Assembly: GCF_964204645.1 (NCBI RefSeq)
Contig: NC_134030.1
Location: forward strand, 7,110,778 to 7,174,777
Direction: 5' to 3'
Length of the DNA: 64,000 nt
From: Tubulanus polymorphus
Taxonomy: Eukaryota > Animalia > Nemertea
Position 1 is the stretch's first letter; every line of letters starts with the position of its first letter. The position numbers were made by a program, and so were the translations under genes. The notes below the pieces were generated by a model. It saw only the letters and a program-made list of their open reading frames with translations. It did not search any database and had not been told where the DNA came from. This document shows, piece by piece, positions 1,654 through 32,200 of this stretch.

Positions 1654-4600
1654 ATGGCATCGGTTAAAATCGAAGACAAACAAACTTTTAAAGAAGCGCT
1701 TTCCGACTTCTCCAATGACACGGCATTTCACGGGGTTAGATACATAGGACACTCTCCAACTATCACCATCAGGTAAGCTTAGCATATCGTCATAAGATCC
1801 GCTAGAAATTATGCTATTAAGATATCACTATTTGTTATCGCAAACTGAACTTTTTATCAATTATTGTGTTTTAAAACTCGATTCCACCTTCAGAAAATGT
1901 ATCAAATTATTATCTCATTCGTATAAGTGGAAATCTACGGAAGCGTCCTGGGGACATAATTGATTTTTTTTTTCTGCTGTCTGAAAAATCATAGAATTAT
2001 ATAAAGATTCGATTTTTTATTAAATGTTATGTTTTTTTGACCGGCGTCGATTTAAATCCGACTTTTTTCACAGAATTAAATCATTTTTTATTTAATTTTA
2101 TCTTTTTCGACTGGTGGCGATTTAATCCCGACTTTTTTCACGAAACTAAATCATTTTTTATTAAATGTTATGTTTTTTCGACCGGTGTTGACTTAATTCC
2201 GATCTTTTTCACGGAGTTAAATCATTTTTTATTTAATTTATCTTTTTTTCGACTGGTGGCGATTTAATTCCGACTTTTTTCACGGAATTAAATCCTTTTT
2301 TTTAATTAAATGCTATGTTTTTTTTCGACCGGCGTCGATTTAATTCCGACTTTTTTCACGGAATTAAAGCATTTTTTTATTGAATGTTATGTTTTTTCGA
2401 CATACTGTGGAATTCCTCACAAGGCCATACGACTTACGAGTTAACGTTTTACGAATTACGAGATCAGCCGTTGGGCGTTTCAGTTCAATTTATCGCGAGA
2501 GGTCAAGGAGAAGCGAATTATGAAACTCAACAGTGGCACGTTAGACTGGTCGCCTGTCCAATTCTGCGCCACCTGCGTTCGCAGTCAGACATCTTATCTA
2601 ATGTAATCAATCTGAAGGTAGAGACCGGCAACCAGTCTATTGCCACGTGAGCTTTCAAACGAGCACTGTATGTGATGGGTGTAATTTTAGCTGAATTTTT
2701 CAACTAATTTTTTGTAACGATGATGGATGGCTCTATGCAGCCCAAACGATGTGTTTCCAAAAAATAAATACATTTCTAAATTGTTGAAAACGTTTAAAAA
2801 ACCTGTTCTAGGAATCGGGATCATGGTCAAAAAGCTCTCCGCCCCGGGGTCCTCGAAAAATGTTTAAAAAATCTTTTCCAGCTAAGATAGTCTATTGAAA
2901 TAAAGATCTTTTAGAATGTATTAGAATCATCGGGCACGTAACCGGGGCAGTGTCAGTGTGTAAATTATTGTCAACATTTTAATAGATTTTGACGGTATCG
3001 CACACCGGCTGGTCACCGCGCAGGTTTCCTGCCCTGTAGTAGCCGTAGCCGGGATTGATCTCACTATGTAAAATGAATACTTTTACAATGAATACTCTTG
3101 ATTACTATTCCGTTCGGAATTACGAAGTCCGTTCTTTGAATCACGTGCCCGTCGGATACTCTGAAGCCAATAGTGAAAAACGTGTAATTCGAAGTCGTAA
3201 TTCGTAAAACGTAACTCGTAAGACGTATGGCCCTTGAGGAATTCCATAGTATGTCGGTCGAAAAAAGTTAAATTTAAAAAAAATGATTTAATTCCGTGAA
3301 AAAAGTCCGAATTAAATCAACGCAAGTCGAAAAAAGATAAAATTAAATAAAAAATGATCTAATCCCGTGAAAAAGTCGGAATTAAATCAACGCCGGTCGA
3401 AAAAAGATAAAATTAGATAAAAAATGATTTAATTCTGTGAAAAAAACGTCGGAATTAAATCGCCGCTGGTCGAAAAAAAACATAAAATTAAATAAAAAAT
3501 GATTTAATTCGGTGAAAAAAGTCGGAATTAAACCAACGCCGATCGAAAAAAAACATGAAATTTAAATAAAAAGTCGAATTTTTATCTAATTTTATGATCT
3601 TTCAATCAGCAAAAAATAGAAAAATTAATTATGTCTGCAGGACGCTTCCGTATAAATCACATCATTTTCAATAAAATTTGAACTTGATTTTAGGCTTCCA
3701 AATACGAACATTATCAAACAATTCAACGAATAGATATAAGATCGACTTTATCACTCAGTTTTATAGATTTAACTGAAAATTATTTTCTTATGAGGGAAGT
3801 CGATTCAAATTTAATTGATTGGTAACCCAGTGCCAATAGCGACCCTGGCAGCTCATCGCTGAATCCTCGCTTGCTACTGTAGCGTTGCCGGTATCCAACT
3901 GCAAAGAACCCCAAAGAACCCATGTAGATAATTTTCAAAAAAGTAGAATTTACTACAATGGTTTGGATCAAGATAACGAAAGCTATAAGTTATGTTCATA
4001 AATTTTGAGTCTGCCTCAAGAGTGAATTTTATACATTGATATATATTTCAAATAGGGTTTGTCGCATAAATCGCTGTTTAAGCATAGACGAAACTATGTA
4101 ATTTGTATGCCAACACTATCCGAATTAATGGTGATTAAAATGTTTAGAAAGGTCCCCCAGAGACGCTGGAAATTGCGATTTGAATTTATTCCAATTGAAA
4201 CGAAATTAGCCCAATTGCAATATTAATGAATTTGTTAGAGTATAAAAACCGACACAGACATCACGTATTTAACCATGGCGATATCAATTAACTATAGGGG
4301 CGTCACAGCAGAAGGATTCGAGGTCCTAAAAGAGAAATATTCGTATATATCACCCTAAACGAGTTGTAATTTCATAATTATAGAAAAATTCGTACCAGTA
4401 TCTCAATATTGAAGATAAATTGTACTTTCTTTTCTCGTACTAAACTTTATGAAGTAGAATGATAAATTGCATGAGCGGAGACGTCTTTTTGTAGATGTAT
4501 CTGGTTGTTGTTGTTTTTGGGTATGACTGGGGCGTTTATCTACCAGGTGCACGACCGAGTCAAATATTACATTTCATGGCCGGTTACAGTGGACAACTGT

Positions 4601-7600
4601 CGAAAACAATCGAGGTCAGATACCATTCCCAGCAGTAACCATTTGTAACACTAACACTTTCAGGTATTTCAGTGAACAAGCCACATTACAAATTTTTTCT
4701 GATCAGCATTTCTTTCCGTTGAAATGGCTTATTCTACTGTTTAGATTATCTGATACTTATGAAGACGGATTGTACGAGTCAATTTCTGAATTTTACCGTC
4801 AGAACGAGAGACGAACAACGCCTAAAACTTCTCAAAATGCTTCAATTACTGGAAATGTTTCGATGGGAGACGCTTTCGAAAATATTGATATGCGGACATT
4901 GATATTGAAATATGGCCATCGTTTGAACAATACCGTGAAATCGTAAGTTAAATCGATGTAGTTTGTAAGATTATCAAGATAAATCCGCTCAATATCGATG
5001 ATAAATTTCGTGTAAATTCCTTCTAATTTCATGAGAGTGAACTTCGAATCCAAGAAATTGACAATTGCTAATCTGACAACTGTTTTGACTGACTACGGAC
5101 AATGTTTGGGGTTTAATCATGATAAAACGAAGCATCTCTACAGCCAAGGGACTGGTAAGTGATGAAAGAAATTGACGCTCATGAACGTAACTTATGTTCA
5201 GTCATTTAATGAAAGCTTTTTCTTTAGGAGCAACATATGGGTTGAACTTGTTGATCAATCTAGAACAGTACCAGAATATGCAAGGAGAACACAAATCTGC
5301 CGGACTTAAAGTTTTAGTTCATGACAAGAATCAAGGAATTCGTATGACAGATTTGTCGTTATCTGTACCACCGTCGATGAGTGCGCTTATCGATGTTCAA
5401 GCTAAAATGGTAAACATGTAGATCAGCTCGATCCTAAATATCAGTAGTTAAGTAAAACATTTCTTTTCGATATATTTGTAACTTCTCATTAACGGACGCT
5501 GAGTCCATTTAAAAGTATACTTTGGTCAGATGAAAAGTGTTTGTAATCAGTTTACCGCAAACGCGTTCGTTGCTATAGTTTTACTTTGTACCAGAATCTA
5601 AATCATTTAATTATACATCGTATGAATGATTTAGATTGAATGTGATCTAAAGCAATTTGGCTATTTGGTATAATTTCAGACGACTGAATTGAAAGATCCT
5701 TACGGAAAATGCATAAAAGACGCCCAAAGACAAAGTATGTGTCAACACCACTGTTATATACGAATGACATCAGCGATTTGTAAATGCCTGCCGTTTTATT
5801 CCGAAGATAGTCCCGCAGGTCTGCCATATTGTACTTTAAAACAGCACAGGGATTGCTACCATCTACAACTCGGTAATGAAAAATTGGAGAAGTGGTGTGC
5901 GGTTGGTCGTATTTTAAAACCCCGCACACTAGAAACAATATGTTATAACTACACGTATCAATTCAGTATAATGCCTTTTTTTCGTAGCTAAAATGCATCA
6001 AAATCAAAAAGTTTGCGGTAATGATGAATGTCCACCATCATGTCAACATCTGACGTACGATTCACGAATCAGTTACGCGGCTCTGTCGAAGAGTATGGCG
6101 AGGAAAATGGCACGAAAAGAGAAACACGACCTGAACATGTTAGCAGATTACAGAAAGGCCAGAGAAGCACTATACAATACTGACCCTCAGCTGGAGGCGA
6201 CGAGCATTGTCGCAGTTCTATCTTTCGTTGAATCACTTAAAGAATCAAAATTCGCCGTAAAAAACGCGTACGAATTTCTGCTTAATCAAACGACGATCAT
6301 TTTTGATACGCTCTCCGTCAGGGACAGTCTTCAAAACATTTCACATTCTGTACGCATGGCAAAAGAAATGTTTTTACGCCATACCAACGTGGAGGAAATC
6401 TCCACGATAGTTATTCCAGGTTTAAAACGATTTAGAACTGCACTGAATGATGCCATTGATTCAGATTTCAAAGTAATCAACAATTTCTTAGCGAACTCGT
6501 CGGTTGTATCACAAATGGATTTTCAAGCAGCGTCTTTAAACGTTGGTGGCATATTTCAAAATATGCTTTATACGGCGTTATTGACTAGGTCAGTTTTTCA
6601 GAATCTAGTTACGAACCTGGTGCAAGATAAAACTGACGCCAGGTATTTGATCGATTTGACTAAAATCACAGTTCACCACAGATTATTTCTCGAATCATGT
6701 GATAAAATTATTACTGCCTGCAATGATTCCAAAACAAAGTTGCGCGACATTAGCAACAGTCAACTAACACGGGATTGGTATGGTTTTTGTAATCTAACCG
6801 GTCAGTTTTACTCCATTATCAGCGAATTCGAAAGATCGGCGATTGATCTGAAATCCGTATTAAAAGACGGTGTTTATAAATTGGACGATTTAGAAAATTC
6901 ATTCAAAACTCACGAATCAGATTTATTCAACGCAGGTTTGAAATATTTTCTAATCATATACGCAAACATGATCAGCAAACCTTCATTCTTCAAAGCAGTT
7001 GGACGTTGGATTTTCCCGTCACCAATTAACGTAATAACTTTGAACAAAGACCTTGTTGAAATGAACAGGAATGTCATTCGACGGCTTCTTCAATCAATGA
7101 TCGTACAAAAGACGATTTCAATATCAGAATTAAATTCTCTGATGCTTGATAATAAAGACCTACTGGATAAGTTCACGCGAGATCTTCAAGTGTTCATGGA
7201 CTATTCGTTGAAAAAGATGGACATACTCAATAAAGATCTAGTTCACCTTTGCCAGGCTGCTATAGACTTCATCTTCTACTACACCACTAAGACCAATTCT
7301 ACTCTTAATATAAAACCATTGATGGAAATCAAGAAACAACTGCAGTTGATCATCCAAGAAGATGTCAAACTAACCAAAGTTATTGATGAATACCACAATG
7401 CGCAAACTAAAATGTCAGTTGTGAACTCAATCTTAAAGGATCATATGACAAAGTACCGGAATAGCATTGTTATTGATGAAGACTTTCTAAGGTTAGTATT
7501 CTGAGGAGTTTCCGCAAATTGTATTCTGGGGGAATTCTAAGAATTGTGCTTAACTTAACCTCTGACGTCTATTTTCAGGAATAATTACGTATACGTTTCG

Positions 7601-9147: not shown

Positions 9148-12100
9148 ATGGCAGATTCAAAAATGGCATCTGTTAAAATCGAAGATAAACAAACATTTAA
9201 AGAAGCGCTTTCCGACTTCTCCAATGACACGGCATTTCACGGGGTTAGATACATAGGACACTCTCCGACTATCACCATCAGGTAAGCTTAGCATATCGTC
9301 ATAAGATCGCTAGAAATTATGCCATTAAGATATTCACTATTTGTTAACGCAGGCTGAACTTTTTATCAATTATTGTGTTTTAAAACTTGTTTTAACCTTC
9401 AGAAAAATGTATCCAATTATTTTGTTAAGTGTGAATTGAGGGAAAAATTTGTATAATGAATACAGCCTTAACAAAAGAATAAATTCTACGATGTCGGTTT
9501 TCCGTCAGTTAATCGCCACCCGAGCTATGTTCCCCTTGCTACAGCGGCACCAATCATCCATACTATACTTAAAAACGCATGCCTACGGAGAAGAGCATTG
9601 CGGCCACGTGGGATTTTTTTAACTCGAAATTTCGACTTTATAAACGAGTTTTTAACACATGTGACATGTGCGCACGCTATGTTGTAAAATTCACACTATG
9701 ACACAACAAGATCAATTTTATCCTCTTCTCTTCAAGCTAGGTTTAAATAATGCCGAAATACGATACTGCCTTAGCAAGCACGATAACGTCATTCTAAGTG
9801 ACCGAACAATTACCTCAGTCGAAATTTCGAGATTAAAAGAAGAAATTTCGACTTTAAAGAAAATGTTCATGTGGCCGCAATGCTCTTCCGTAGATACCCG
9901 CACTCACCGGGAGGCACAACAAAACACCGGGAACCTTGTTATGTTTTTAAAACGTTTTTATTCTTCCCTTGATAAAATATGTGTAAATATTTGTAACCAA
10001 AATCATCTTTTCCCTCCACATACCACGGAAATGGTAGGAGATTGATAAATTATCTTATTCGTAGTGAAAATCACTTCATTTTCAAAGAACTTGATTTTCA
10101 GGCTTCCAAATACGAAAGTTGTCAAAGAATTCAACGAATGAATAAATGATCGACTTAATCACTCGGTGATGCAGATTTAACTGAAAATTGATTTACTTAT
10201 AAGGGAAGTCGAATCAAATTTAATTGATATGTAGAAAGAAGCGTGGTAGCCCAGTGCCACCAGCGATCTTGGCAGCTTATCGCTGAAGAATCCTCGCTTG
10301 CTATTGTAATGTTGCTCCACTCCCTGCAAAGAACCCATATACATATAATAATAACTTTATAATAACTTTAAAAAAAGTAGAATTTACTACAAAGATTTGG
10401 ATGCACCATCAATATAACGAAAGTAACAACTTATGTTTATTAATTTGGAGTCTGCTTCGAGAGCGAATTTTATACGTGAATATTTTAAGTATGATCCCAT
10501 TAATCCCTCGTATACGCTGTTGAGTTTATGCCGAACCTTATGTAATTTGTATGTCAACACAATCAGAATTGATGGTGATTAAAATGTTGAGAAAGGCCCC
10601 GGGGACGATGGAAATTTCGATTTGAATCTATTTCGATTGAAACAAAATTTACCCATTTGCAATATTAATGAATTTGTTAGAGTATAAACCAGACATCACG
10701 CGGTAAGCCGTAACGACACCAATTAACCGTTGGCAGGAGGGTAGGAGTCCCAAAGGAGAGATATTCTTATCTATCAATTGTATGAGTTGTCATTTCAAAA
10801 TTTCAAAATTATAGAAAAATGCGCCTTAATATTGAAGATGAATTGTACTTTTTTCTCGTACTAAACTTTGTGAAGTAGAATGATAGAGGAAATGAGCGGA
10901 GATATGTTTTGTAGATGTATTTGGTTGTTGTTGTTTTTGGGTATGACTGGAGCGTTTATCTACCAGGTGCACGACCGAGTCAAATATTACATTTCATGGC
11001 CGGTAACCGTGGATATATCTCTCGAAAACAATCGAGGTCAGATACCATTCCCGGCAGTTACCATTTGCAACACTAACACTTTCAGGTATTTTAAAAAGGC
11101 ACATTATACAATTTTCTGATCAGCTCGTCTATCCGATAAAATGGCTTATTCTATTGTTAGATTATCTGATACATACGAAGATGAGGTGTTCAAGTCTATA
11201 TTTGAGTTTTACCACCGGAATGTGAGACCAACAACGCCGACAACTTCTCAAAACGTTTCGATTATTGGAAATAATTCGATGGGAGACGCTTTCGAAAATA
11301 TTGATTTGCGGACACTGATATTGAAATATGGCCATCGTTTGAACGATACCGTGAAATCGTAAGTTAAATCGATGTAGTTTGTAAGATTATCAAAATAAAT
11401 CCGCTTAGTATCGATGATAAATTTCGTGTAAATTCCATGTCATTTCATGAGAGTGAACTTCGAATCCAAGAAATTGACAATTGCTAATCTGACAACTGTT
11501 TTGACTGACTACGGACAATGTTTGGGGTTTAATTATGATAAAACAAAGCATCTCCACAGCCAAGGGACTGGTAAGTGATGAAAGAAATTGACACTCATGA
11601 ACGTAACTCATGTTCAGTCATTTGATGAAAACTTTTTCTTTAGGAGCAGGATATGGATTGAACTTGTTGATCAATCTAGAACAGTACCAGAATATGCAAG
11701 GAGAACACAAATCTGCCGGACTTAAAATTCTAGTTCATGATAAATATCAAGGAATTCGTATGAAAGATTTGTCGTTATCTGTTCCACCGTCGATGAGTGC
11801 ATTTATCGATGTTCGAGCTAAAATGGTAAACATGTAGATCAGCTTATTGCTCGATCCTAAATATCAGTAGTTAAGTAAAACATATCTTTTTGATAGACTT
11901 GCAACTTCTTAATAACAGACACTGGATCGATTTGAAAGTACTTTTGTCAAAAAGATGTTCGTAATCAGTTAACCGTAAAAATGTCCGTTGCTATATTCTA
12001 TTCGGTCTTTTCGATCAAAAGCTATTTGTCTATTTGGTATAATTTCAGACGACTGAATTGGAAGAACCGTACGGAAAATGCATTAAAAACGCCCAAAGAC

Positions 12101-14536
12101 AAAGTATGTGTCAACACTACTGCTACATACGGGTGACGTCATCAATATGTAAATGCATGCCGTTTTATGCCGAAGAAAGTCTTGCAGGTCTGCCATATTG
12201 TACTTTAAAACAGCACAGGGATTGCTACCAAGTACAACTCGGTAATGAAAATGTAGAAGTGATGTGCGGTAGTGTCGTACTTTTAAAACCCCGCACACTA
12301 GCTACAATATGTTATAACTACATGTATCAATTCAGTATAATGCCTTCTTTTCGTAGCGAAAATGCGTCAAAACCAAAATGTTTGCGGTATTGATGAATGT
12401 CCACCACCATGTCAACAACTGACGTACGATTCACGAATCAGTTACGCGGCTCTGTCGAAGAGTATGGCGAGGAAAATGGCACGAAAAGAGAAACACGACC
12501 TGAACATGTTAGCAGATTACAGAAAGGCCAGAGAAGCACTATATATTATCGACCCGCATCTGGCAGCGATGGGCTTTGCTGCAGTTCTATCTTTCATTAA
12601 ATCGCAAGAGGAATCAAAATCCGCCGTATTAAACACGCACAAAATTATGGTTGATCAAGAAAGAATAATTTCAGATTTGATCTACGTCCAGGGCAGTCTT
12701 CAAAACATTTCGAATTCAGTACGCATTGCGAAAGAAATGTTTTTACGCCATACTAACAGCGAAGCAATCTCCACGACAGTTATTCCAGGTTTGAACACAT
12801 TTAAAACGGCCCTTACTGATACTCTTGATTTAGATTTCGAAGTTATTAACGATTTCCTAGCGAACTCGTCGGTTGCATCACAAATGGATTTTCAAGCATC
12901 GTCTTTAAAAGTTGGTGTGGTATTTCAAAATATGCTTACTACAGCGATATTGACTAGGTCAGTTTTTCAGAATCTAGTCATCAACCTGGTGCAAGATAAA
13001 ACTGTAGCGAGGTATATGATCGATTTGCCCAAAATCACACATCGCCACAGATTATTTCTCGAATCATGTGATACAATGATTACTGCCTGCCATGATTCCG
13101 AAACTAAATTACGCGTCATTCGCAACAGTCAACTAAAACGGGATTGGGACCATTTCTACAATCGAACCGGTCAGTTCTACTCCATTATCAGCGAATTCCA
13201 TAAATCAGCGATTGATCTGAAATCCGTATTAAAAGACGTTGTTTATGGATTAGACCAACTCGAGAATTCCTTTAAAACTCACAAATTAGAGATAACAAAC
13301 GCATATTTGAAGTATTTTCTAATCACATACGCAAACATCATCAGCAAACCTTCATTCTTCAAACCAGTTGGACGCTGGATTTCCCCGACACCAATTAACG
13401 TTATAACTTTGGCCGAAGACATTATCCAAATGAATGAAAATTTCACTGGATGGCTCAAAACAATGATCGCACAGAAACAGATTTCTATAGCAGAATTGAA
13501 TTCTCTGATGCTGAAAAATAAAGACCTACTGGAAAAGTTCGCGGAAGATCTTCGAGTGTTCATGGAATATTCGTTGAAAAAGATGGATGCAGTCGTTAAA
13601 GATCTAGTTCAACTTTGCCAGCCTGCTATAGACTTCTTCTACAACTACATCAGTAAGACCAATTCTACTCTCAATGTACAAGCGTTGGCGGGAATAAAGA
13701 AAAGACTGCAGTTTGCTACCCAAGACGAGGCTAAACTAAGCAAAGTCATGAATGAATTCCACAATGCGCAAAATAGAATGAGAGTTACTAACTCAGTCTT
13801 AGACGATCATATTACGAAGTACAGGAATAGCATTGTCATTAACGAAGACTTTGTAGTGTTAGTATTCATATGAGTTTCTGCAAGTTGTTCCGCGGTTATA
13901 TGTTTTACATTTAACCTCTGACATTTATTACAGGAATAATTACGTATACGTTTCTGTCTACTTTCGAACGCTGAGTTTGGAGACGTTGAAAAAGTCTAAA
14001 GGATATTTGTGGTTTTCGTTAATTTGTAAGTAAATAGTAGTTGATTATGCAAACAGGTTATCATAGTTAGATGTAATACTGATATAACTTAGAATTTATA
14101 TAGGTACCTTGATACACAAATTTTAATTCCAAAAATAAAATTGAATGAATTGATCAATACATTGGTTTTTACAGACCAATAGGCCAAGTGAATTTTGTGT
14201 TAACATGAATTGCCTATGCTAGGTGGCTTAAGCCAGATTCCAAGCAATGACTTAGATAAACTATTATTAGTGGATTGTTGAGTCCCTTGAGTATTGTAAC
14301 CGTGGACGATAAAATGAACATTTTAGTAGATTCAGAAAGAGAGTTTGAAATAAAATATATAATGAATCCGACATGTTACATTCGTTTCTCATTCTCATAT
14401 TTTAGGTGATATAGGTGGCTCTGCCGGGCTTTACTTAGGCGCATCTTTATTGGCTATTGCCGAGGTCTTCTGGTTTTTCGGATCTCAACTCGTGTACCGT
14501 TTGAGGCGGCTGCGACGAGTACACGCTGGTGAATAA
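9148..14536 (+). CDS. DEG/ENaC channel paralog C with giant knuckle insertion (~906 aa)
   Basis: Exons 9148-9281, 10915-11085, 11161-11358, 11452-11570, 11644-11825, 12049-12241, 12357-13857, 13934-14025, 14406-14536 join in frame. Motifs: TAFHGVRYI, TM1 CIWLLLFLGMTGAFIYQV, FPAVTICN, YGQCLGFN, 10-Cys thumb, CDIGGSAGLYLGAS. Confidence 0.92.
9584..9892. mobile_element. ~310 bp MITE with TAC..GTA termini (IS3EU-like) in intron 1 of copy C
   Basis: TACGG(AG)AAGAGCATTGCGGCCAC / GTGGCCGCAATGCTCTTCCGTA; internal CGAAATTTCGA repeats; flanks CATGCC/GATACC. Confidence 0.8.
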
Positions 14537-15261: not shown

Positions 15262-16233
15262 TCATTTTGAGCAATTTCGATACATCGAATCGACGACAGG
15301 ATTTGATTTTAGTCTTATATCGTACACCCATTCGTGCAGTAAACGTTCGCCAACCATCAAACGTTCGTTCATCATTCCCGCATCGCAGCGCCTCTCAACG
15401 AACGGTAAATACGGCCGAAGATTCGCGCAGTCAGTTTTATCCGGGGTTGTTCCCGACTCCCTCCTGTGATTCCAGTAACCGGCTTTACATTCGCGGTCAA
15501 CATCACCGTACATCGTCGTGACCACTTTCTCGGTATGTCTGGGCGCCGGTAGCCACATACCGTTAAACGGTACGTTCACCAATGGGTGAACGTCAGCGGA
15601 AGATATAATAAGCTTATCGTTCCGAGAGTCGTAAACGCTACCGTTAGATTCATACGACGGCCACATATCAACGAACGGCCATCTCCACGGGTACTTGTGA
15701 AACGCGCTCGATTTGCCGATTCGAAATAATTTCCACTGACCTTTGAAGTCCTTTCTCGAATGAATTTTTAAATTAATCGGTGGTTTATTACCCTTGGCGA
15801 ATACATCGTCCCTGAGTTTGGCTAAATCTGACTGCGGTATCAAAACATCGTAATCGTCGTCCCACGGTACGAGGCCATGGTGCCTATAGGCGCCTATCAG
15901 CGAACCTCCGTGCAGCATGTAAGTGAGATTATTTTGTTTCATTAGTACGTCGAAATCCCTGATTAGCTCCAGGAATTCTCGTTTATCCTGCGGATTTTGA
16001 CCGAGTTTGAACCTGGTTAGTTTCATGATCGCCGGAAAGTGGGGATACTCATGAACGTGTTTCTTTAAACCGAGCTTCACCGTTCTTAATCGTTCGTCGA
16101 TGGAATACGCCGAATAGGCAGCGGCAAAAATCTCAAACTGATGTAAAACGTACATCACAATTATCATAAACGATAAAAAACAAAGACAGAAGAACTTGCG
16201 GTGTTGTAAAGCCGTTGACCACATAGCCGCCAT
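15262..16233 (-). CDS. LicD-family (fukutin/FKRP-related) phosphotransferase, type II membrane protein, 323 aa
   Basis: Single coding exon; N-terminal signal anchor FFCLCFLSFMIIVMYVL; nucleotidyltransferase-fold motif HGGSLIGAYRHHGLVPWDDDYDV; WPFVDMW and PAPRHTEKVVTTMYG are typical of LicD proteins; splice acceptor (tttgcag) just 5' of the ATG. Confidence 0.9.
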   Translation of the reverse strand: MAAMWSTALQHRKFFCLCFLSFMIIVMYVLHQFEIFAAAYSAYSIDERLRTVKLGLKKHVHEYPHFPAIMKLTRFKLGQNPQDKREFLELIRDFDVLMKQNNLTYMLHGGSLIGAYRHHGLVPWDDDYDVLIPQSDLAKLRDDVFAKGNKPPINLKIHSRKDFKGQWKLFRIGKSSAFHKYPWRWPFVDMWPSYESNGSVYDSRNDKLIISSADVHPLVNVPFNGMWLPAPRHTEKVVTTMYGDVDRECKAGYWNHRRESGTTPDKTDCANLRPYLPFVERRCDAGMMNERLMVGERLLHEWVYDIRLKSNPVVDSMYRNCSK

Positions 16234-17388: not shown

Positions 17389-20300
17389 TCAGTGTCTGGT
17401 GAAATAACTTTTGTACAATTTGAATATTCGAGTCCTCAGAATAAAGCAAGCAAAAATCAAAAATCCTTGCGAACCGTTGAAAACGGTATAAATCAATTTG
17501 AATGTGTAATTACCGCGACTCGCGATCAGCCCAAAATACCAATTCAAACCCATAATCAAAGACAACTTTGTTACGAGGATAAAATTACGATCGGGTCGTC
17601 TTGTATTTCTTGTCATTTCCGACTCCTTTCTCGCGCGACAGATCGATTGAATGGTCAGAACGAAGAAAGTTAAATTAGCCGCGCATATGACGGCGATAGG
17701 AACGAGAAATGTGTACAGAAGCTGCGTATAGTTAGAAATCCAACATACGTGAGCGTTAGCGTACATGAAACCGATATGCGGAAGCGTGTACGCGATCGCG
17801 ATGCAGCTACCGACGAGAACAGCTGGCATGAACCACGCATACGCGCAGTAACCCCGTAGACGTGTCATCTGGTCGGCGCGGGTCCCTGTCTCGATCCCGG
17901 CCGGTGTAGCGAACGTGCGGTATGTGTCGTAACCAATTACGTTCGACCAAAAGAACACGACGAGCCACAGATAGTGAACTAACATACCGATTACTGCGCA
18001 GAGCACTGGGCGGGATAGTACCGATGACTGAAATACGACGGTGTTAAATAAAAGCATGACCAAAAATAACGATGCTGACATGTGCATGAGATTTATACCC
18101 GGTAAAGATCGGAGCGATCGAAATACCGTGTAGGTTAAGAGCAGAACTGCAAGTCCGATCAGCGATAACGCACTTGTTACAACAGTGATCATCTCTTCAA
18201 CGTCTGTATCGAGATCCTTCGTCAAATTGATCGTATCGAAACAAACGATGGCGGAGTTTCCTGCTAAATGAAACTGGAAAGGACTCAACAGTACGTCTAA
18301 ACCATCAGCGGTCACCAGTCGGTGTTTCTGCCCGGTAGAAAGAAGGAATTCTCGACTGAAAATAACCTCCGAATCGCATCGATTGTCACAAATAGTCAAG
18401 TATCGTTGCGGAACTTCCCCACGTCGAACGACGTATTCCAGAAATACGCCCGATGTTTTACGTAGGGGTAGCCACTGGGTACGCCGCTTGGTGGCGTTAG
18501 TAGCTGAAACGAATGACACGTATTCGATGCCTTGTTGATCTAAGATCGTGTAACTAGTATCATCAACGAGCTCGATTATTTTCTCTGGTAGACATTCTTT
18601 CAGGTCCGCGTAACGATGATTCCTAACTCGTAGTTCAAACTTTGAATCGTCAAATTTACAGCGAGCGTTCGATGCATTGACGGCACCGGTCATTCTGTCG
18701 AGCAGATTTTTCTCAGTCGTTTCGGTATAAAAGGCCGATGACAGGTCAATCGAAAATGAACAGCAATTATCATCGATCCGAAATGATATCGACAGGTTTT
18801 TTAAATTCGCTTTAAACGACTCGAAAAAGAAATCCTTCATCTTGTCCGTCAAGGAAATGATTGCAGTGACATCAGATGCGCAATTAAACGAAACGGATGA
18901 TTCGACATGAATCAGGCGTCTAGGCTCCACCGAGGGAAATTGCTCTTTATATTCTTCAACGTCCGAACACTGGCCATTCAGTGCATTAAAGAGTGTTCCC
19001 GGCGTTTGGCAATTCGGTAACTTTTGAACGAGACGATTGGTGTTCGAATCAATCAGTTGAGTCTCTATCAACATCGGTCGGGATAAATCGAATAGAACGG
19101 ATAAAACAGGCCTTTCATAATTTTTCATAACATCCGTCGGGAAGGCGCATTCGAAATCACTTCGTTCGTAGCCGTTACAGATAGCGCAGTGTATGTTTCT
19201 AAAGACCAGATTATTTTTGTTTTTAATGTAAATGGGCTCCACGTAGCTTTGACACGTCGTGTACCAAGGGTTCTTCGAATCGAGGCATTCTACGATCTGT
19301 TTCTTATTCTTAGAATCAAAACATTGCATTTCGTGGTTCGGAGAGTATTTCCACTCAATCTGTGGCACGTAGTAACCAGCGCGTAACCTCTCGAAAAGGC
19401 GACCATCGTCGCGAAAAGACACCGACTTAGCTTTAGGGCCCGGAGAATGAAAGCGTATATGGACCGGTGTCAAGGCGCTAGAGTCGATGTCTTCCACGTG
19501 GCAGCGAAGGCAAAAATAATTACGAAAGAGAAGATCGTCGTAGAAAACTGGCGTATACTCGACTAAATCGTTGATCGATGAATTCCAGCCGATATCGATC
19601 GGGTGTTCACACCGTCGTTTGATCGATGAATCAAACCGATTACTTGCGGGTGGACACCGCGAAACTGACCAATAGTTCCCAAGATTATTGTAACTGAAAT
19701 AGGAGACTTGAAATGAGCTGCATAAGACATAATTTACGATGGACGACGGAAATGGTGTTGCCGTGGTCGTGTTAGTGGCACAACTCGTGGCATAACTTTT
19801 GCAACAAATTCCCATCATGACGCACGTTTCTTCACACGAACAAACTGTCGTTTTTCTTCCACATTCACAGTCGGACCTCGCGCACTGCGGACTCGTGATC
19901 GCTGTGCGATTTTCACTCATTCCTGAAAAGCAAATTATGATAGCAATTTATTTTCGAAGGTAAATTACGTATTTATAGAAGCATTCACACGGGAGGCCTT
20001 ATCATCATTTTTAGGCCCAGTGCACGCATATAGCTATCACCATAAGAAGAACATCGCGAGAAAATATCACTCTTGAAGATGAATGAATGCCTTTGGTACA
20101 GTGGGCTTCATGTATTCAACTGAGTCACCAGTATATAGAATTTTACGCATGCATAGCTTGTGAAATCAACGTAAAAAAACTTGTATCACTGAAATTTTAG
20201 TAGTTCTATTGCTAAATCCATAACAAGCAAAAACAACGACAAAACACGTTTTTCGGCAATTGTTAAAATCGTACAACGTTATATACGTAACATATAATGT

Positions 20301-21637: not shown

Positions 21638-24600
21638 CTAAATCGGAGACGTGATCGCATTGATATGGTTCTCATTTCTACCAAATCGATTCGCTTCACA
21701 TCCGTTCTTCGTCTCGGTGACGCCATCTTGTTCGTCCTGTTTATCAGTGCGCTTTCGTCGCAGCCGCTTCAAGAGGTACACGAGTTGAGATCCGAAAAAC
21801 CAGACGACCTCGGCAATCGCCAGTAGTGATCCGCCTAAATAAAGCCCGGCAGAACCACCTATATCACCTAAAATACGAGAATGAGACACGAATGTAACAC
21901 AGAATTCACGATATAACGATCTCCTTATAGGTATGTAACACATTTTATCAACATCAGGCATAATCTCTTTGGATGGATATTCTTAAACGATGTATGCTCA
22001 TTTTGCCGTAGTAAAAATAAGGACTCTACAGGTAGCAAATAAGGACTCTACAGCCCGATATTATAGAATCGAGAATCAATGCATTGTCTCTGAAGCGTAA
22101 CTTAAGTCACTGTAAAAACCCACAACGCCGTTTGCATTCCGGATCTACCAAGCATATATCATATATACTAATGAATTCTAATCGAGACTTATTCATAAAA
22201 GAAAATATACGACAATCTGATAATTCTTAATTCTCTTAGTTTTTTTTCATTTAGATTGTATAAGTAAAACACCAAGTTTCTATTGAATGATTAAACATTT
22301 TATCAATTTCGTGTACTTACAAACCAACGAAAACCACAAATATCCTTCAGACTTTTTCAACGTCTCCAAACTCAGCGTTTGAAAGTAGACTGAGACGTAT
22401 ACGTAATTATTTCTGGAAATATAAGTCAGAAATCGAACGTAATAACTAAATTACCACCGGAAACAGCTTGTAGAACTTCCTAACAAGAATACTAACACTA
22501 CAAAGTTTTCACCAATGACAATGCTGTTCCGATACTTTGTCACATGATTGTTTAAGAGCGAGTTTGCAAGCGTCAATTCAGTTTGCGCCTCGAGATATTT
22601 TTTCATAGTTTCTGTTAATTCATTATTTTCTTCGACGATGTACTGAAGTTTTTTCTTCATTTTCGCCAATGATGTTCTAGCATCAGCAGGAATCATATAA
22701 CTGAGCATCTTTCCGATGAAGTCTCTTGCAGGTTGGCTACGCCGGTCCATATCTTTAACGACCGAGGATATCACTTTCAACGAATTATCCATGAACGTTT
22801 GTAGATCTAGCGGGAACTTCTCCAGTAGCTCTTTATTATCAAACATCAAAGAATTTAAGTCCACCATGGAAATCTGTTTCTGCGCGATCATTGTTTTAAG
22901 CCGTCGAGTGACATTCGCGTTTATTACTTCAATGTCGTCGCTCAATGTTACTATGTTGATAGGTGTAGGGAAAAGTATCCGTTTAGCTGCGCCATACTTC
23001 ATAGGTGCGCTGATACTGTTTTCATATAAGATTGTAACATATTTCAGATATAAGTCGGACAAATCTATTCTGGAGGTCTTTAATGAATTCACAAGATCAT
23101 CAAATATATAAACAACAGTATTCAATTTGGTTTTCAGATCAATCGCAGATTTTTCGAATTCATCGATAATGCCAGGAAACTGACCGGTTAGATTGTAGAA
23201 ATTGTCCCAATACCGTCTTGATTGATTTTTACCAACATCGTATAACTTTACCTTAGAATCATTACAGGCAGTAATCAATGCGTCACATGATTCTTGAAAG
23301 CTTTTAATACTACCAATAATTGTTGGATAATTGATCAATGACTTCACGAAAGTTGTATATTCTCTGAAGTTGGTATATAGATCCTGAAAAGCTAGCCGAG
23401 TCGATATCGCTGTGTTAAGCATATGTTTGTTTACGAAACCGACATTTGAAAACGCTTCTTGAAAATTTATTTGCGATACAGCCGACGAGTTCGTTAGGAA
23501 ATCATTTATCACTTTGAAATCTGAAACAAGGGTCTCGTTAAGGGCTGTTTTGAAGTTTACCAAGCCCGGAATAACTATCGTGGAGATTTTTTCCAATTCG
23601 GTATAGCGTAAATAATTCACTTTCTCCGCTCGTACAGATATTGACATTTCTCTAAGTTTTTTTGCGACGTAGAGCTTATCGGAATAGATGATTTTATCTT
23701 GATCCTCCAGAAAATCGCTTACGTTTTTTATGACCATTTCAGATTTTTCTAGTGATGAAACAAAATTGAAAACCGTAGAAAAGCTCGCATTCGCCAGACG
23801 AGGGTCAGCGTTATATAGAGCTTCTCTTGCCATTTTGTAATCTGCTAACATGTTCAGATTGTTTTTCTCTTTTTGTGCCATTTTCCGCGCCATGCTTTTC
23901 GACAGAGCCGCGTAACTGATTCGTGAATCGTACGTCAGTTGTTGACAAGGTGGTGGACATTCCCTAGTGCCGCAAACTGTTTGATTTCGACGCATTCTCG
24001 CTTTAAAATTAAAAGAAATGACAATTATATAACGTATACAGAATAAGTGAAGGGACAAGACGGTTGCCGGTATGTGCGAGGCATCGATCTAAGATCTGGT
24101 GAGTGAGTGCTAGTGCACCGATAACCACTTCCCTTTCCCTTACCGAGTTCTAGTTGGTAGCAATATCTGTGCTGTTCTAAAGTACAATACGGCAGACCTG
24201 CGGTACTGTCTTCGGCATAAAACGGCAGGCATTTACATATTGATGACGTCACCCGTATATAACAGTTATGTTCGCACATACTTTGTCTTTGGGCGTATTT
24301 CATGCAGTTTCCGTACGGATCTTGCAATTCGGTCGTCTGAAATGAAACCGAATAGACAGACGTTTTTATTTTTGGGTTGAATGATACAGGAAACTAATAA
24401 CAGCTCATCTTTCTTAAAAAAAGTATCTTGAAAGGGATTCAATGAATGCAAATGATAAATTGCCAGCATATTTTACTGCATTCGCCAATTCACTTATGTA
24501 CACCAACGTTCTAACTCTACAGTTTACCTTTTTAGCTTGAACATCGATAAGCGCACTCATTGAGGGCGGTACAGATAACGACAAATCTTTCATACGAATT

Positions 24601-29241: not shown

Positions 29242-32200
29242 TTATGCTTCTATTTCAGCGCGCATCCGTCGCAGCCGCTTCAAGCGGTACAGCAGTTGAG
29301 ATCCGAAAAACCAGACGACCTCGGCGATAGCCAATAAAGATGCGCCTAAATAAAGCCCGGCAGAACCACCTATATCACCTAGAATACGAGGATGAGAAGG
29401 GAATGTGACATACGATTCATGATATCATGTTAAGTATATAATCAACATTCGAAAGGATCCAACCACTCAAGTTGGCGTATGAAAGTAAGGCATTTAAAAT
29501 GTCTGCAAAAACTCGTTTGTATTCCATACATTCCAAGGGAAATATCTACATAGTGATGAATTCTTATCGGGTCTTCATCAAAAAGATAAACGATAAGCAA
29601 ATGATTTTCTTTTAGTTGCCGTACTTAGATTATATCAGCAAAAGACCAAGCTATTTGAGCTTGTATTACATGATTTGATAGTCAATCAGTACAAATAAAT
29701 AACTTACAAACTAGGGAAAACCACAAATATCCTTCAGACTTTTTCAACGTTTCCAGACTCAGCGTTTGAAAGTACACGGACACGTATACGTAATTATTTC
29801 TGAAAATATGTCAAGGGTTAAGCATAATAAGCGTATCGATCGCCACCGGAAAACACATCGCAGCATTTAAGAATACTTACATAATAAAGTCTTCACCAAT
29901 GACAATGCTGTTCCGATACTTTGTCATATGATCGTTTAAGAGTGAGGTTGCAAGCGCCAATTCAGCTTGCGCATCGCGATACTTTTTTATAGTTTCGGTC
30001 AGTTCACCATTTTCGTCGACAATGTACTGCAGTTTTTTCTTAATTCTCGCCAATAATCTCCTAGCCTCAACAGGAATATCATAACTAAGCATCTTTCCGA
30101 TGAAGTCCCTTGTGGGTTGGCTACGCCGGTCTATATCTTTAACGACTGAGGATATCGCTTTCAACGAATTATCCATGAACGTTTGTAGATCTCGCGGGAA
30201 CTTCTCCAGTAGGTCTTTATTTTCCTGCATCAGAGAATCTAATTCCGCCATCGATATCTGTTTCTGCGCGATCATTGTTTTAAGCGGTCGAGTGACATTC
30301 GCGTTTATTTCTTCAATGTCGTCACTCAATGTTACTATGTTGATTGGTGTAGGGAAAAGAATTCGTTTAGCTGCACCATATTTCATAGGTGCGCTGATAC
30401 TGTTTTCATATAAGATCGTATCAAACTTCAAATATAAGAAGAATAGCTCTTTTTTGGATGTCTTTAATGAATGCTCATGATCATCAAATTTATAAACAAC
30501 TTTATTCAATTTGGTTTTCAGATAAATCGCAGATTTTTCGAATTCATAGATGATACCAGGAATCAGACCGGTTAGATTGTAGAAACTAGCCCAATCCCGT
30601 CTTGATTGACTATTGCCAAAATCGCGTAATCTTGCCTTAGAATCATTGCAGGCAGTAATCAATGTGTCACATGATTCTTGAAACTTTATAATGTGACCAA
30701 TCATTATTGGAAAATCGATCAATGACTTCACGAAAGTTGTATATTCCTTGAAGCTGGCATATAGATCCTGAAAAGCTAGCCGAGTTGATATCGCTGTGTT
30801 AAGCACATTTTTGTATACGAAATCAACGTTTGAAAACGCTGCTTGAAAATTCATCTGCGATACAACCGACGAGTTTGTTAGGAAATCATTTATCACTTTG
30901 AAATCTGAAACAAGGGTCTCGTTAAGGGCCGTTTTAAAGTTTATCAAACCCGGAATAACTATCGTGGAGATTTTTTCCATGTCGGTATAGCGTAAATAAT
31001 TTCCTTTCTGCACTCGCACAGAACGAGACATTTCGCTCAGCTTTTTTGCAATGTAGAGCTTATCCGAATGGATGACTTTGTCTTGATTTTTCAGAAATTT
31101 GCTTACGTTTTTTATTGCCATTTCAGATTTTTCTAGTGATGAAACAAAATTGAAAGCCGTAGTAAAGCTCGCATCCGCCAGATGAGGGTCCGCATTATAT
31201 AGAGCTTCTCTGGCCATTTTGTAATCTTCTAACATTTCCAGATTATTTTTCTCTTTTTGTGCCATTTTTCGGGCCATACTCTTCGACAGAGCCGCGTAAC
31301 TGATTCGTGAATTGTACGTCAGTTGTTGACAAGGTGGTGGACATTCATCAATACCGCAAACTGTTCCATTTCGACGCATTTTCGCTAAAAAAACAATTAC
31401 GTATACGGAATGAAAATGTAGTTGCAAGAGTCACTCAGTTCGCGACATTGTGTGCGGGGCTCGAACCTTAGATTTTGTGAGTTCTTGCTAGTGCACCGCT
31501 CACCACGCCTGCCTTTTCCTTACCGAGTTGTAGTTGGTAGCAATCTCTGTGTTGTTTTAAAGTACAATATGGCAGACCTGCGGGACTATCTTCAGCATAA
31601 AACGGCACGCATTTACATATCGAAGATGTCACCCGTATATAGCAATAGTGTTCACACATACTTTGTCTTTGGGCGTTTTTTATGCATTTTCCGTACGGAT
31701 CTTCCAATTCAGTCGTCTGAAATGACGCCACTGAATAGACAGATCTAAACTAATTTTATCGTTGGGCGGGGAGGACACATTTACAGCAAACTCGGAACGA
31801 CACTTTGTCTTAAAAGTAAACGTATTTTGAAAGGCATTCAATCTTTTGCAAGTGAGAATTCGCTAGCATTTCCTTATTTAATCATTCGTTCATTCAAAAT
31901 AAATAATTCTTCAACAAAAATGATTATAATGTACACCAACTTTCTAGATGAACGTTTTACCTTTTTAGCTTGAACATCGATAAGCGCACTCATCGACGGC
32001 GGTACAGATAACGACAAATCTGTCATACGAATTCCTTGATGTTTATCCTGAACTAAAACTTTTAGTCCGGCAGATTTGTGTTCTCCTTCCATGTCCTGGT
32101 ACTGTTCTAAATTGATCAACATGTTCAATCCATATGCCGCTCCTATATTGAATTAGAGATTTCCTTAGAATACTGAACACGAGTTTCATAAAAAAATGGA

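Follow-up and report, generated by a model that had tools for sequence, protein, structure and literature searches.

A large predicted helical domain in the knuckle of tandemly arrayed DEG/ENaC channel genes of the nemertean Tubulanus polymorphus

DEG/ENaC channels are trimers with the knuckle on top, and the knuckle packs against the finger and the upper palm, both of which move on gating. These channels have been studied intensively as sensors of acid, peptides, salt and force, and the route from stimulus to gate, above all for force, is debated. The C. elegans degenerins MEC-4 and DEG-1 have additional extracellular regulatory and cysteine-rich domains and so provide a precedent for lineage-specific extracellular modules in DEG/ENaC proteins; these additions lie before and within the thumb/finger and are cysteine-rich, unlike a helical knuckle bundle. 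In ENaC alpha, N-glycans on the knuckle and palm have been proposed as force-sensing tethers to the extracellular matrix (Knoepp et al. 2020, PMC6955349). The channels described here would likewise have a glycosylated extracellular knuckle, with 5 to 8 sequons in the insert, three of them conserved; the ENaC alpha knuckle, however, is short and has a glycan as the tether, whereas the present family adds a whole protein domain. The C. elegans channel DEL-10 is reported to carry an amiloride-blockable current, with an unidentified stimulus (PMC10424705, PMC9822975). DEL-10 (Q10025) is the namesake of the automatic "del-10" annotations found in other species. These include canonical spiralian examples of a long knuckle, annotated as degenerin-like protein del-10 in Mytilus edulis, Mizuhopecten and Octopus; further canonical examples are named acid-sensing ion channel 4-B-like (Mya arenaria, Liolophura) or are uncharacterized (LOC135497392 of Lineus longissimus).

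We analyzed a 64-kb stretch of Tubulanus polymorphus DNA (the window), which contains eight genes (A to H) with a large insert in the knuckle. Gene B, on the forward strand, has nine exons. Exon 1 (9148 to 9281) begins with the ATG and encodes the cytoplasmic N terminus and the H-G gating motif (91% identity to model P0005 by tblastn; donor site read), and exon 2 (10915 to 11085; splice sites read) encodes TM1 and the start of the ectodomain. Exon 3 (11161 to 11358), which covers the variable finger region and has the highest dN/dS of the core (0.47), and exon 4 (11452 to 11570) were both placed by tblastn and splice sites. Splice sites also delimit exon 5 (11644 to 11825; palm/beta-ball) and exon 6 (12049 to 12241; cysteine-rich thumb). 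Exon 8 (13934 to 14025; 90% identity by tblastn) encodes beta11/beta12, and exon 9 (14406 to 14536) encodes TM2 with the G-A-S selectivity filter, a short C terminus and the stop. When the exons were compared to Pfam ASC (PF00858), positions 21 to 85 (exon 2, E = 9.6e-18), 196 to 264 (exon 5), 275 to 344 (exon 6), 354 to 393 (exon 7) and 433 to 455 (exon 9) were matched; the first two pieces each scored above the 23.6-bit cut-off, and the other three, which are short, scored 16.4 to 21.5 bits. Models of Tubulanus paralogues matched the same profile with E values of 1e-49 to 1e-80. The pore and gating features of gene B (H-G in exon 1, TM1 in exon 2, and TM2 with G-A-S in exon 9) are intact, and the Deg position in these channels is occupied by a small residue. 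The exon lengths sum to 2721 nt, or 907 codons, for a protein-coding gene of 906 codons.

The seventh exon of gene B is a giant one of 1501 nt (12357 to 13857, +), bounded by an acceptor (ttttcgtag/CG) at 12356/12357 and a donor (GT/gttagt) at 13857/13858. An uninterrupted open reading frame of 503 aa (12362 to 13873, +) runs through it; because the length of the exon is not divisible by 3, its skipping would disrupt the frame. In order, exon 7 encodes the final thumb cysteines and beta10, alpha6, an insert of about 440 residues, and alpha7 up to the boundary with beta11. The 45 N-terminal residues of its reading frame account for ASC positions 354 to 393, and the profile is broken off at about position 394 of 455 by the insert, which by its flanking anchors and an AlphaFold2 (AF2) model is a helical stretch of 440 residues (12494 to 13813, +). 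Structures of ASIC1 and ASIC2 (6l6p, 6vtk, 2qts) share the subunit fold, as judged by sequence (E = 1e-38 to 1e-31), and are alignable over TM1, palm, thumb cysteines, beta10, alpha6, alpha7, beta11-12 and the G-A-S of TM2. They differ in having zero residues between alpha6 and alpha7, compared to 440 to 460 in the window family. In the alignment of the public Tubulanus paralogue P0001 with human ASIC2 (6l6p_A), residues 12 to 363 fall on chain positions 19 to 391 and residues 826 to 891 on positions 390 to 455. The two stretches abut in the ASIC2 chain, and thus the 462 extra residues of P0001 are a pure addition at the junction of alpha6 and alpha7. Correspondingly, 467 to 488 residues separate the end of beta10 from the start of beta11 in the window family, versus 28 in a short Nematostella channel. 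Gene B is therefore a DEG/ENaC (Pfam ASC) gene whose giant exon encodes a genuine domain, about 440 residues long, between the knuckle helices alpha6 and alpha7. This bears out the anatomy proposed in the sequence-only reading, in which DEG/ENaC channels carry about 440 to 450 extra helical residues in the knuckle, encoded by exon 7: the reading frame, the splice signals and the ASC and ASIC2 alignments all agree with it.

The giant exon is present in the window as seven intact copies, with partial copies at both edges. Besides that of gene B, the copies lie at 5993 to 7504 (+) in gene A, 22451 to 24058 (-) in gene C, 29877 to 31427 (-) in gene D, 37893 to 39485 (-) in gene E and 51363 to 52967 (-) in gene G, all given as ORF limits. 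In gene F the ORF (44920 to 46713, -) extends upstream across a short intron into exon 6, and in gene H the exon (62858 to 64000, +) is cut by the window end. The seven intact copies have 52 to 71% mutual identity and zero stops. There are nine tandem paralogues on the chromosome, and ORFs of at least 440 codons are intact in these nine and in further dispersed copies; the genome as a whole has at least 17 loci of the window insert type, plus loci of the canonical type. In some Tubulanus paralogues, an intron interrupts the insert itself.

The window inserts are poor in proline (1.4 to 2.5%) and glycine (1.8 to 2.5%), and their hydrophobicity has a period of 3.4 to 3.6 residues. Each has 5 to 8 N-x-S/T sequons, of which three are conserved in position, and no TM-like segment was found in them (Kyte-Doolittle 19-residue maximum, 1.54). 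The motif ESCDxxITAC is invariant across the seven window copies; both of its cysteines are present in P0001 and absent from the more distant paralogues P0002 to P0004. The low proline and glycine content, the sequons and the invariant motif had all been pointed out from the sequence, and the composition counts and the seven aligned copies agree. AF2 modeled the window insert as entirely helical with a pLDDT of 73 and the Lineus insert (31 sequences) as helical except for one short hairpin, with a pLDDT of 91.4 and a pTM of 0.79. A four-helix bundle occupies corresponding positions in the two models. Long helices, the longest of about 79 residues, are predicted to run antiparallel in the insert and to make up an elongated bundle. 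The domain is further predicted to be glycosylated, to be free of membrane segments, and to enter and leave the ectodomain at a single site on its upper face.

We found no described domain that accounts for this insert. A Pfam search with the window and canonical inserts gave chance-level matches only, and the insert profile matched no PDB sequence even at an E value of 10. Foldseek comparison of the window and canonical insert models to the PDB returned nothing at E <= 0.001. A search of the ESM Atlas yielded shape matches with a TM of at most 0.40 and no usable match by features, and a VIA wide structure search with both models recovered only generic helical bundles, whose Z scores of 10 to 15 are the background for helical models. 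The sequence-only reading had suggested profile searches with the insert alone and the use of Foldseek; the searches here gave neither a recognized domain nor a significant fold match. The best shape matches of the insert models were bacterial chemoreceptor/histidine-kinase four-helix bundles (4HB), talin/vinculin-type bundles and de novo helical bundles; 8gl3_A (Z = 14 to 15 over 172 to 175 residues) and 4k0d_B (Z = 11.2) resemble the models in shape at the level of the helical background only. Membership in the 4HB sensor or talin-like bundles was rejected, as Foldseek found none at E <= 0.001, the Z scores of 10 to 15 are at background, and no sequence matched.

Relatives of the domain occur in other spiralians. 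The profile of the window-type insert, compared to 1.84 billion proteins, had four matches, all of them Tubulanus DEG/ENaC proteins, and a homologue search with the insert of P0003 returned P0003 itself as the only match. With P0007, a bivalve-like long channel, as the query, we found proteins of 850 to 960 aa in which an insert of about 480 residues occupies the corresponding place in the knuckle. Proteins from Mya, Ruditapes, Mercenaria, Mytilus, Pecten, Mizuhopecten, Haliotis, Gigantopelta, Nucella, Liolophura, Argonauta and Lineus covered 96 to 100% of P0007, and those from Octopus covered 89%. Long-knuckle proteins are thus present in bivalves, gastropods, a chiton, cephalopods, Capitella, Lineus and Tubulanus, and carry automatic names only ("del-10-like," "ASIC-like," uncharacterized). 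Bivalve-like metagenome copies of the long channel are intronless. The suspicion, voiced from the sequence alone, that uncharacterized homologs might exist in other invertebrates was correct, since mollusc, Capitella and Lineus proteins have the insert at the same place. The companion suggestion of a candidate new architecture has to be amended: proteins with the long insert were already public for many molluscs, Capitella, Lineus and Tubulanus. There is no curated domain for the insert, and a literature search found no paper describing it. These proteins form a conserved, undescribed DEG/ENaC subfamily, and the window family is not a one-off.

The two groups of long-knuckle channels share the ASC core, a predicted helical insert at alpha6/alpha7, the beta10-beta11 spacing and probably a motif where the insert begins. 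The spacing is 477 to 489 residues in molluscs, Lineus and Tubulanus P0050, 517 in Tubulanus P0048 and 550 in Capitella, so that a range of 467 to 489 covers the window family and most canonical members. The canonical Tubulanus gene P0050 (C1:959451-964765) also has one giant exon, of 1545 nt. Comparison of gene B with P0050, within Tubulanus, showed that the flanking introns have equal phases (codons split 1+2 and 2+1), with the downstream intron at the identical residue (before beta11 N-F/Y) and the upstream one within about 2 residues. When the window-type and canonical insert profiles were compared by hhalign, they aligned start to start with a probability of 88% (E = 3e-6), confidently over only the first 70 or so columns; with smaller alignments, the probability was 61%. 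A search of the Tubulanus genome with canonical insert profile A4 found nothing. The window family differs in its very long branch, in retaining no recognizable similarity along most of the insert and in its tandem expansion, which has given one genome at least 17 loci of this type; the canonical insert shows stronger conservation and was modeled at a pLDDT of 91 versus 73. Collectively, these comparisons suggest that the window insert probably descends, with rapid divergence, from an ancient insertion, some 480 residues long, that marks out a spiralian clade of long DEG/ENaC proteins in molluscs, an annelid and nemerteans, and that the window family is probably a fast-evolving, tandemly expanded branch of this group.

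Alternatively, the window family and the canonical clade may have acquired their inserts in separate events, through convergent insertions into a permissive loop. Such an origin would suit the weakness of the profile match past about 70 residues, the absence of any hhalign match between Tubulanus inserts and a profile of three bivalve inserts, and the fact that canonical motifs are unrecognizable in the window inserts. In a core tree that included few short outgroups, the window family formed a 100/100 clade with a stem of 2.14 and was left in a polytomy. A second origin would nevertheless have to reproduce the insertion point, the spacing, the single giant exon, the intron phases, the near-identical intron sites and the start-to-start alignment of the profiles, and outside Tubulanus, the nearest relatives that a length-limited search found for the window-family core are themselves long-insert proteins. 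We therefore consider independent gain unlikely.

A different concern is that the giant exon might in part be an in-frame internal intron (an "exitron"), so that the mature insert would be much smaller than the ORF implies. Transcripts with the middle of exon 7 spliced out had been named in advance as an outcome that would count against the domain, and one public gene model goes some way toward this: in the NCBI model of gene C (XP_074653009; P0005, 779 aa), ..IVIPGL is fused to TSRIDL.., which drops 483 nt (161 codons; 23078 to 23560, -) between G/GTAAAC and TTAAAG/A, and an alternative 3' donor finishes the giant exon 39 nt early. The GT of this internal donor, however, is part of a Val codon unique to gene C, the six remaining copies coding for N, K, I, M or T at this position, and the internal acceptor has no pyrimidine tract. 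Moreover, the stretch removed includes the best-conserved portion of the insert (dN/dS of 0.25 to 0.5, with the invariant sequon and Cys pair), and the entire insert is retained in the four other RefSeq models (P0001 to P0004) and likewise in the models of over 15 further species. It is thus improbable that the reading frame overstates the size of the domain to any great extent.

The insert is under purifying selection, which is weaker than that on the core. Its dN/dS is 0.56 (0.35 to 0.70 for pairs of copies) versus 0.20 to 0.25 for the core; in 30-codon windows along the insert, values were 0.25 to 0.79 throughout, and no such window had a dN/dS above 1, which would have indicated positive selection. 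Within the Tubulanus array, the insert has evolved 2 to 3 times faster than the core, a pattern that fits diversification of whatever the domain recognizes. That the array is instead a graveyard of non-functional duplicates whose long ORFs are young and undecayed is very unlikely, despite a frameshift in exon 2 of gene A, caused by a 2-nt deletion, and the fairly high dN/dS of the insert, because synonymous divergence among the copies is already 0.25 to 0.69 and yet no stop occurs across nine 440-codon inserts, because dN/dS is below 1 in every insert window and 0.11 to 0.32 in the core exons, and because the pore and gating motifs of gene B are intact.

The reading that we favor, with a probability of roughly three in four, is that gene B and its relatives encode a selected knuckle domain of about 440 residues, derived from an ancient spiralian insertion, that would form a helical bundle at the apex of the channel and may act as a sensor or regulator. 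Given a trimer with an apical knuckle, three insert bundles would extend outward from the top of the channel and make the ectodomain about twice as tall. Since the knuckle contacts the moving finger and upper palm, an extracellular sensor or regulator would be the most likely role. Attachment to a partner (matrix, mucus, a ligand or another protein) or the passing on of force could let the insert bias gating. The pore machinery, with its H-G motif, small Deg residue and G-A-S filter, is ordinary. As the sequence-only reading proposed, the three inserts may form a crown and serve as ligand binders or as tethers. More tentatively, and with considerable doubt, the bundle of about 480 residues might represent an undescribed DEG/ENaC gating module, tether or ligand sensor, with its diversification in Tubulanus amounting to a receptor repertoire. 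Such a module would link the knuckle and finger to a partner outside the cell (matrix, mucus, cuticle or a soluble ligand) and thereby open or tune the pore, and tandem diversification could then have produced receptors of differing specificities.

For the DEG/ENaC family, these data add a clade, spread across several spiralian phyla, with a confidently foldable knuckle domain of about 480 residues that has no Pfam entry or solved relative. The clade is a natural experiment in which a sensor module would have been added to the DEG/ENaC scaffold. Channels with and without the insert lend themselves to direct comparison in oocytes, and the bundle, as predicted, is well suited to cryo-EM. In Tubulanus, the array combines a conserved pore core with a faster-evolving apical domain, as do receptor families that diversify their recognition surface.

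Gene B, one of the tandem DEG/ENaC genes in the window, has nine exons on the forward strand (9148-9281, 10915-11085, 11161-11358, 11452-11570, 11644-11825, 12049-12241, 12357-13857, 13934-14025, and 14406-14536), and splice sites were read for all nine; their lengths sum to 2721 nt, or 907 codons with the stop counted. Exon 7, the giant exon, is a single exon of 1501 nt with an acceptor (ttttcgtag/CG) at 12356/12357 and a donor (GT/gttagt) at 13857/13858, and a continuous 503-aa ORF (12362-13873, forward strand) spans it; thus, the exon limits proposed in an earlier, sequence-only reading were borne out. Because of its length, skipping this exon would cause a frameshift. Its first ~45 residues match positions 354 to 393 of Pfam ASC (PF00858), which comprise the last thumb cysteines, β10, and α6. 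The exons 5′ of it match ASC positions 21 to 85, 196 to 264, and 275 to 344, and the two exons 3′ of it encode β11/β12 and TM2 with the G-A-S filter (ASC 433 to 455). Nothing unusual was seen in the motifs of the pore and gate, and the added domain is shown to be extracellular in character.

For comparisons at the level of the whole protein, paralogue models from RefSeq stood in for gene B itself. Against human ASIC2 (6l6p_A), the paralogue P0001 (937 aa) gave two aligned stretches: its residues 12 to 363 pair with chain residues 19 to 391, and its residues 826 to 891 pair with chain residues 390 to 455. Since these stretches abut in the solved ASIC2 chain, which has no residues at this junction, 462 residues have been added exactly between α6 and α7, and no part of the ASIC fold is replaced. 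Correspondingly, the Pfam ASC profile is broken at ~position 394 of 455 in the paralogue models, and the end of β10 is separated from the start of β11 by 467 to 488 residues in the window family versus 28 in a short Nematostella channel. All three comparisons agree with the original placement of the extra residues in the knuckle.

The window contains seven intact copies of the giant exon, plus partial ones at both edges; the copies share 52 to 71% identity across the exon and have no stops. The insert is poor in Pro (1.4 to 2.5%) and Gly (1.8 to 2.5%), has a dominant hydrophobic period of 3.4 to 3.6 residues, and carries five to eight N-x-S/T sequons, of which three are at conserved positions; the scarcity of Pro and Gly and the presence of sequons had been noted in the first description. 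No transmembrane-like stretch was found in it. The motif ESCDxxITAC, which had been called invariant, is so in the window copies; its two cysteines are present in P0001 and absent from more distant paralogues. Selection was estimated exon by exon for genes A to G by the Nei-Gojobori method. For the insert, dN was 0.28 and dS 0.50 (dN/dS = 0.56; pairs, 0.35 to 0.70); for core exons, dN was 0.06 to 0.07 and dS 0.30 (dN/dS = 0.20 to 0.25). Sliding 30-codon windows over the insert gave dN/dS values of 0.25 to 0.79, none of them above 1. Thus, the insert codes for protein and is under constraint, although two to three times more weakly than the channel core. In the same genes, insert dS between subtypes (0.5 to 0.7) comes close to double the value for core exons (0.26 to 0.36), and the two are equal within the C/D/E subtype; gene conversion that homogenizes the core exons and leaves out the insert is a possible cause.

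Exon 2 of gene A (4570-4630) has a frameshift between ..WPVTVD and ENNRGQIPFP, with 2 nt fewer than in gene B. Either an assembly error in gene A or its being a pseudogene may account for this; the ORF of its giant exon is still intact. Two intronless ORFs lie on the reverse strand: one of 323 aa between genes B and C (15262-16233) that matches the LicD family (PF04991; E = 6e-22), and one of 843 aa (17389-19920), rich in cysteine in its N-terminal region and carrying a 7TM domain of the secretin type (PF00002; E = 2e-26). The 843-aa ORF coincides with the window's only GC-rich stretch (GC 0.44).

An insert profile searched against 1.84 billion representative proteins returned only four matches, all RefSeq DEG/ENaC models of Tubulanus polymorphus (861 to 937 aa), and each keeps the full insert. 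A broader profile run on the 268-Mb Tubulanus assembly located nine copies in tandem (C6:7.11-7.18 Mb) and further copies on C2, C10, C8, C4 (three loci), and elsewhere on C6 (three loci); some dispersed copies have an intron within the insert, and a few have stops.

The RefSeq model of gene C (P0005; XP_074653009, 779 aa) removes 161 codons from within the giant exon (23078-23560, reverse strand; bounded by G/GTAAAC and TTAAAG/A), which would make a form shortened by internal splicing the normal one. However, the internal donor arises from a Val codon peculiar to gene C among the copies, the acceptor lacks a pyrimidine tract, the excised part is the best conserved of the insert, and the insert is retained in four other Tubulanus models and in all models from other species, all of which argues against this form. 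At the level of gene models, removal of the exon's middle, which the sequence-only reading had named as contrary evidence if found in transcripts, is proposed in P0005 and in none of the four other Tubulanus models. An uninterrupted 895-aa ORF of the canonical type, i.e., the long-knuckle type of molluscs and Lineus, is present on a 3656-nt Logan contig from a scallop-like organism, which may be of DNA or RNA origin. P0005 also ends the exon 39 nt early, at an alternative donor. The GT of this donor is formed by K-Y codons (AAG TAy) right before α7 (22480-22560, reverse strand, and equivalents in other copies), and its use drops the 13 residues of α7; gene B has the same GT, making alternative 3′ ends of the exon conceivable.

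With the P0001 core as the query, we recovered long channels from a metagenome assembly (P0006 and P0007) in which ~455 residues are added at this position of the knuckle; P0007 is intronless on a 357-kb contig. P0007 in turn matched 55 proteins at an E value of ≤1e-20, among them proteins of 850 to 960 aa with 29 to 37% identity over 96 to 100% of the query (89% in Octopus). Long-knuckle proteins were found in bivalves (Mya, Ruditapes, Mercenaria, Mytilus, Pecten, and Mizuhopecten), gastropods (Haliotis, Gigantopelta, and Nucella), a chiton (Liolophura), cephalopods (Argonauta and Octopus), and the nemertean Lineus longissimus; Tubulanus P0048 and P0050 and Capitella were covered only partially. 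Therefore, the candidate new architecture was right in its anatomy and overstated in its uniqueness, the same design being present in deposited mollusc, Capitella, and Lineus proteins, and the caveat that uncharacterized homologs might exist in other invertebrates proved apt. No Pfam domains besides ASC were found in the long-knuckle proteins. They bear machine-assigned names, such as "degenerin-like protein del-10" and "acid-sensing ion channel 4-B-like," or are listed as uncharacterized. Full-text searches and targeted reading of recent papers and reviews on DEG/ENaC phylogeny turned up no account of an insertion in the knuckle; those papers mention several "uncharacterised clades," and Caenorhabditis elegans DEL-10 is described as carrying an amiloride-blockable current of unknown stimulus (PMC10424705, PMC9822975). 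A tree of the channel core places Mya plus Ruditapes as the sister group of the metagenome organism, which is thus probably a bivalve. Its genome, within a metagenome assembly (ENA ERZ25069866, L013; P0006 to P0024), holds at least 15 long-knuckle paralogues, 54 to 80% identical; the single one inspected consists of one 2625-nt ORF without introns, pointing to an expansion of retrogene origin.

Window-type and canonical inserts are alike in position and spacing. The gene for P0050, a canonical Tubulanus protein (C1:959451-964765), has one 1545-nt exon, which starts ~20 residues before the β10 cysteines and ends at the codon preceding N-F of β11, followed by two small exons. The introns flanking the giant exon interrupt codons in identical phase in this gene and gene B; the downstream intron falls at one and the same residue in the two genes, and the upstream introns differ in position by no more than about two residues. 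Profile-profile comparison of 13 window-type with 22 canonical inserts aligned start to start (probability, 88%; E = 3e-6), with confidence confined to the first ~70 columns, which include a common motif right after α6; smaller alignments gave a probability of 61% or no match. In the core tree, the window family is a 100/100 clade whose very long stem joins a polytomy, which speaks neither for nor against a single origin. Based on position, gene structure, and the profile match, we consider it likely (probability of roughly 0.8) that both types derive from one insertion. Four divergent canonical-type giant exons (C6:4094320-4095600, C6:543240-544787, C1:28684600-28685811, and C1:26795885-26797111), with open frames of 455 to 619 aa and 18 to 25% identity to the P0050 insert, indicate that Tubulanus holds more long-knuckle lineages besides the window type.

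AlphaFold2 predicted an all-helical fold for the window insert with seven copies (pLDDT, 73; pTM, 0.55) and a more confident model for the Lineus insert with 31 canonical sequences (pLDDT, 91.4; pTM, 0.79), with helices at 35-113, 142-179, 218-250, 256-285, 287-347, and 363-405 and one short β-hairpin close to a nearly invariant proline. Foldseek found no match to either model at an E value of ≤0.001. An exhaustive structure aligner returned de novo four-helix bundles, bacterial four-helix sensor domains, and talin-type bundles at Z scores of 10 to 15, the background for helical models, so that the likeness to these bundles is one of shape only; both models have the same bundle as their top match, over equivalent stretches (78-254 and 94-293). 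The predicted domain is a long up-and-down helical bundle with no specific known relative. The window genes are a divergent, expanded member of a conserved spiralian DEG/ENaC subfamily, publicly deposited and uncharacterized, that is defined by the helical knuckle insert and a β10-β11 spacing of ~480 residues.

DEG/ENaC subunits form trimers in which the knuckle sits on top, beside the finger, and three bundles would stick out from the channel apex. Since the palm is coupled to both knuckle and finger, gating could be biased by a partner that binds the bundle or by force applied to it. ENaC requires its knuckle and palm glycans to sense shear (PMC6955349), and the insert could thus plausibly act as a tether. 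Faster evolution of the insert within a tandem array suggests that recognition is diversifying.
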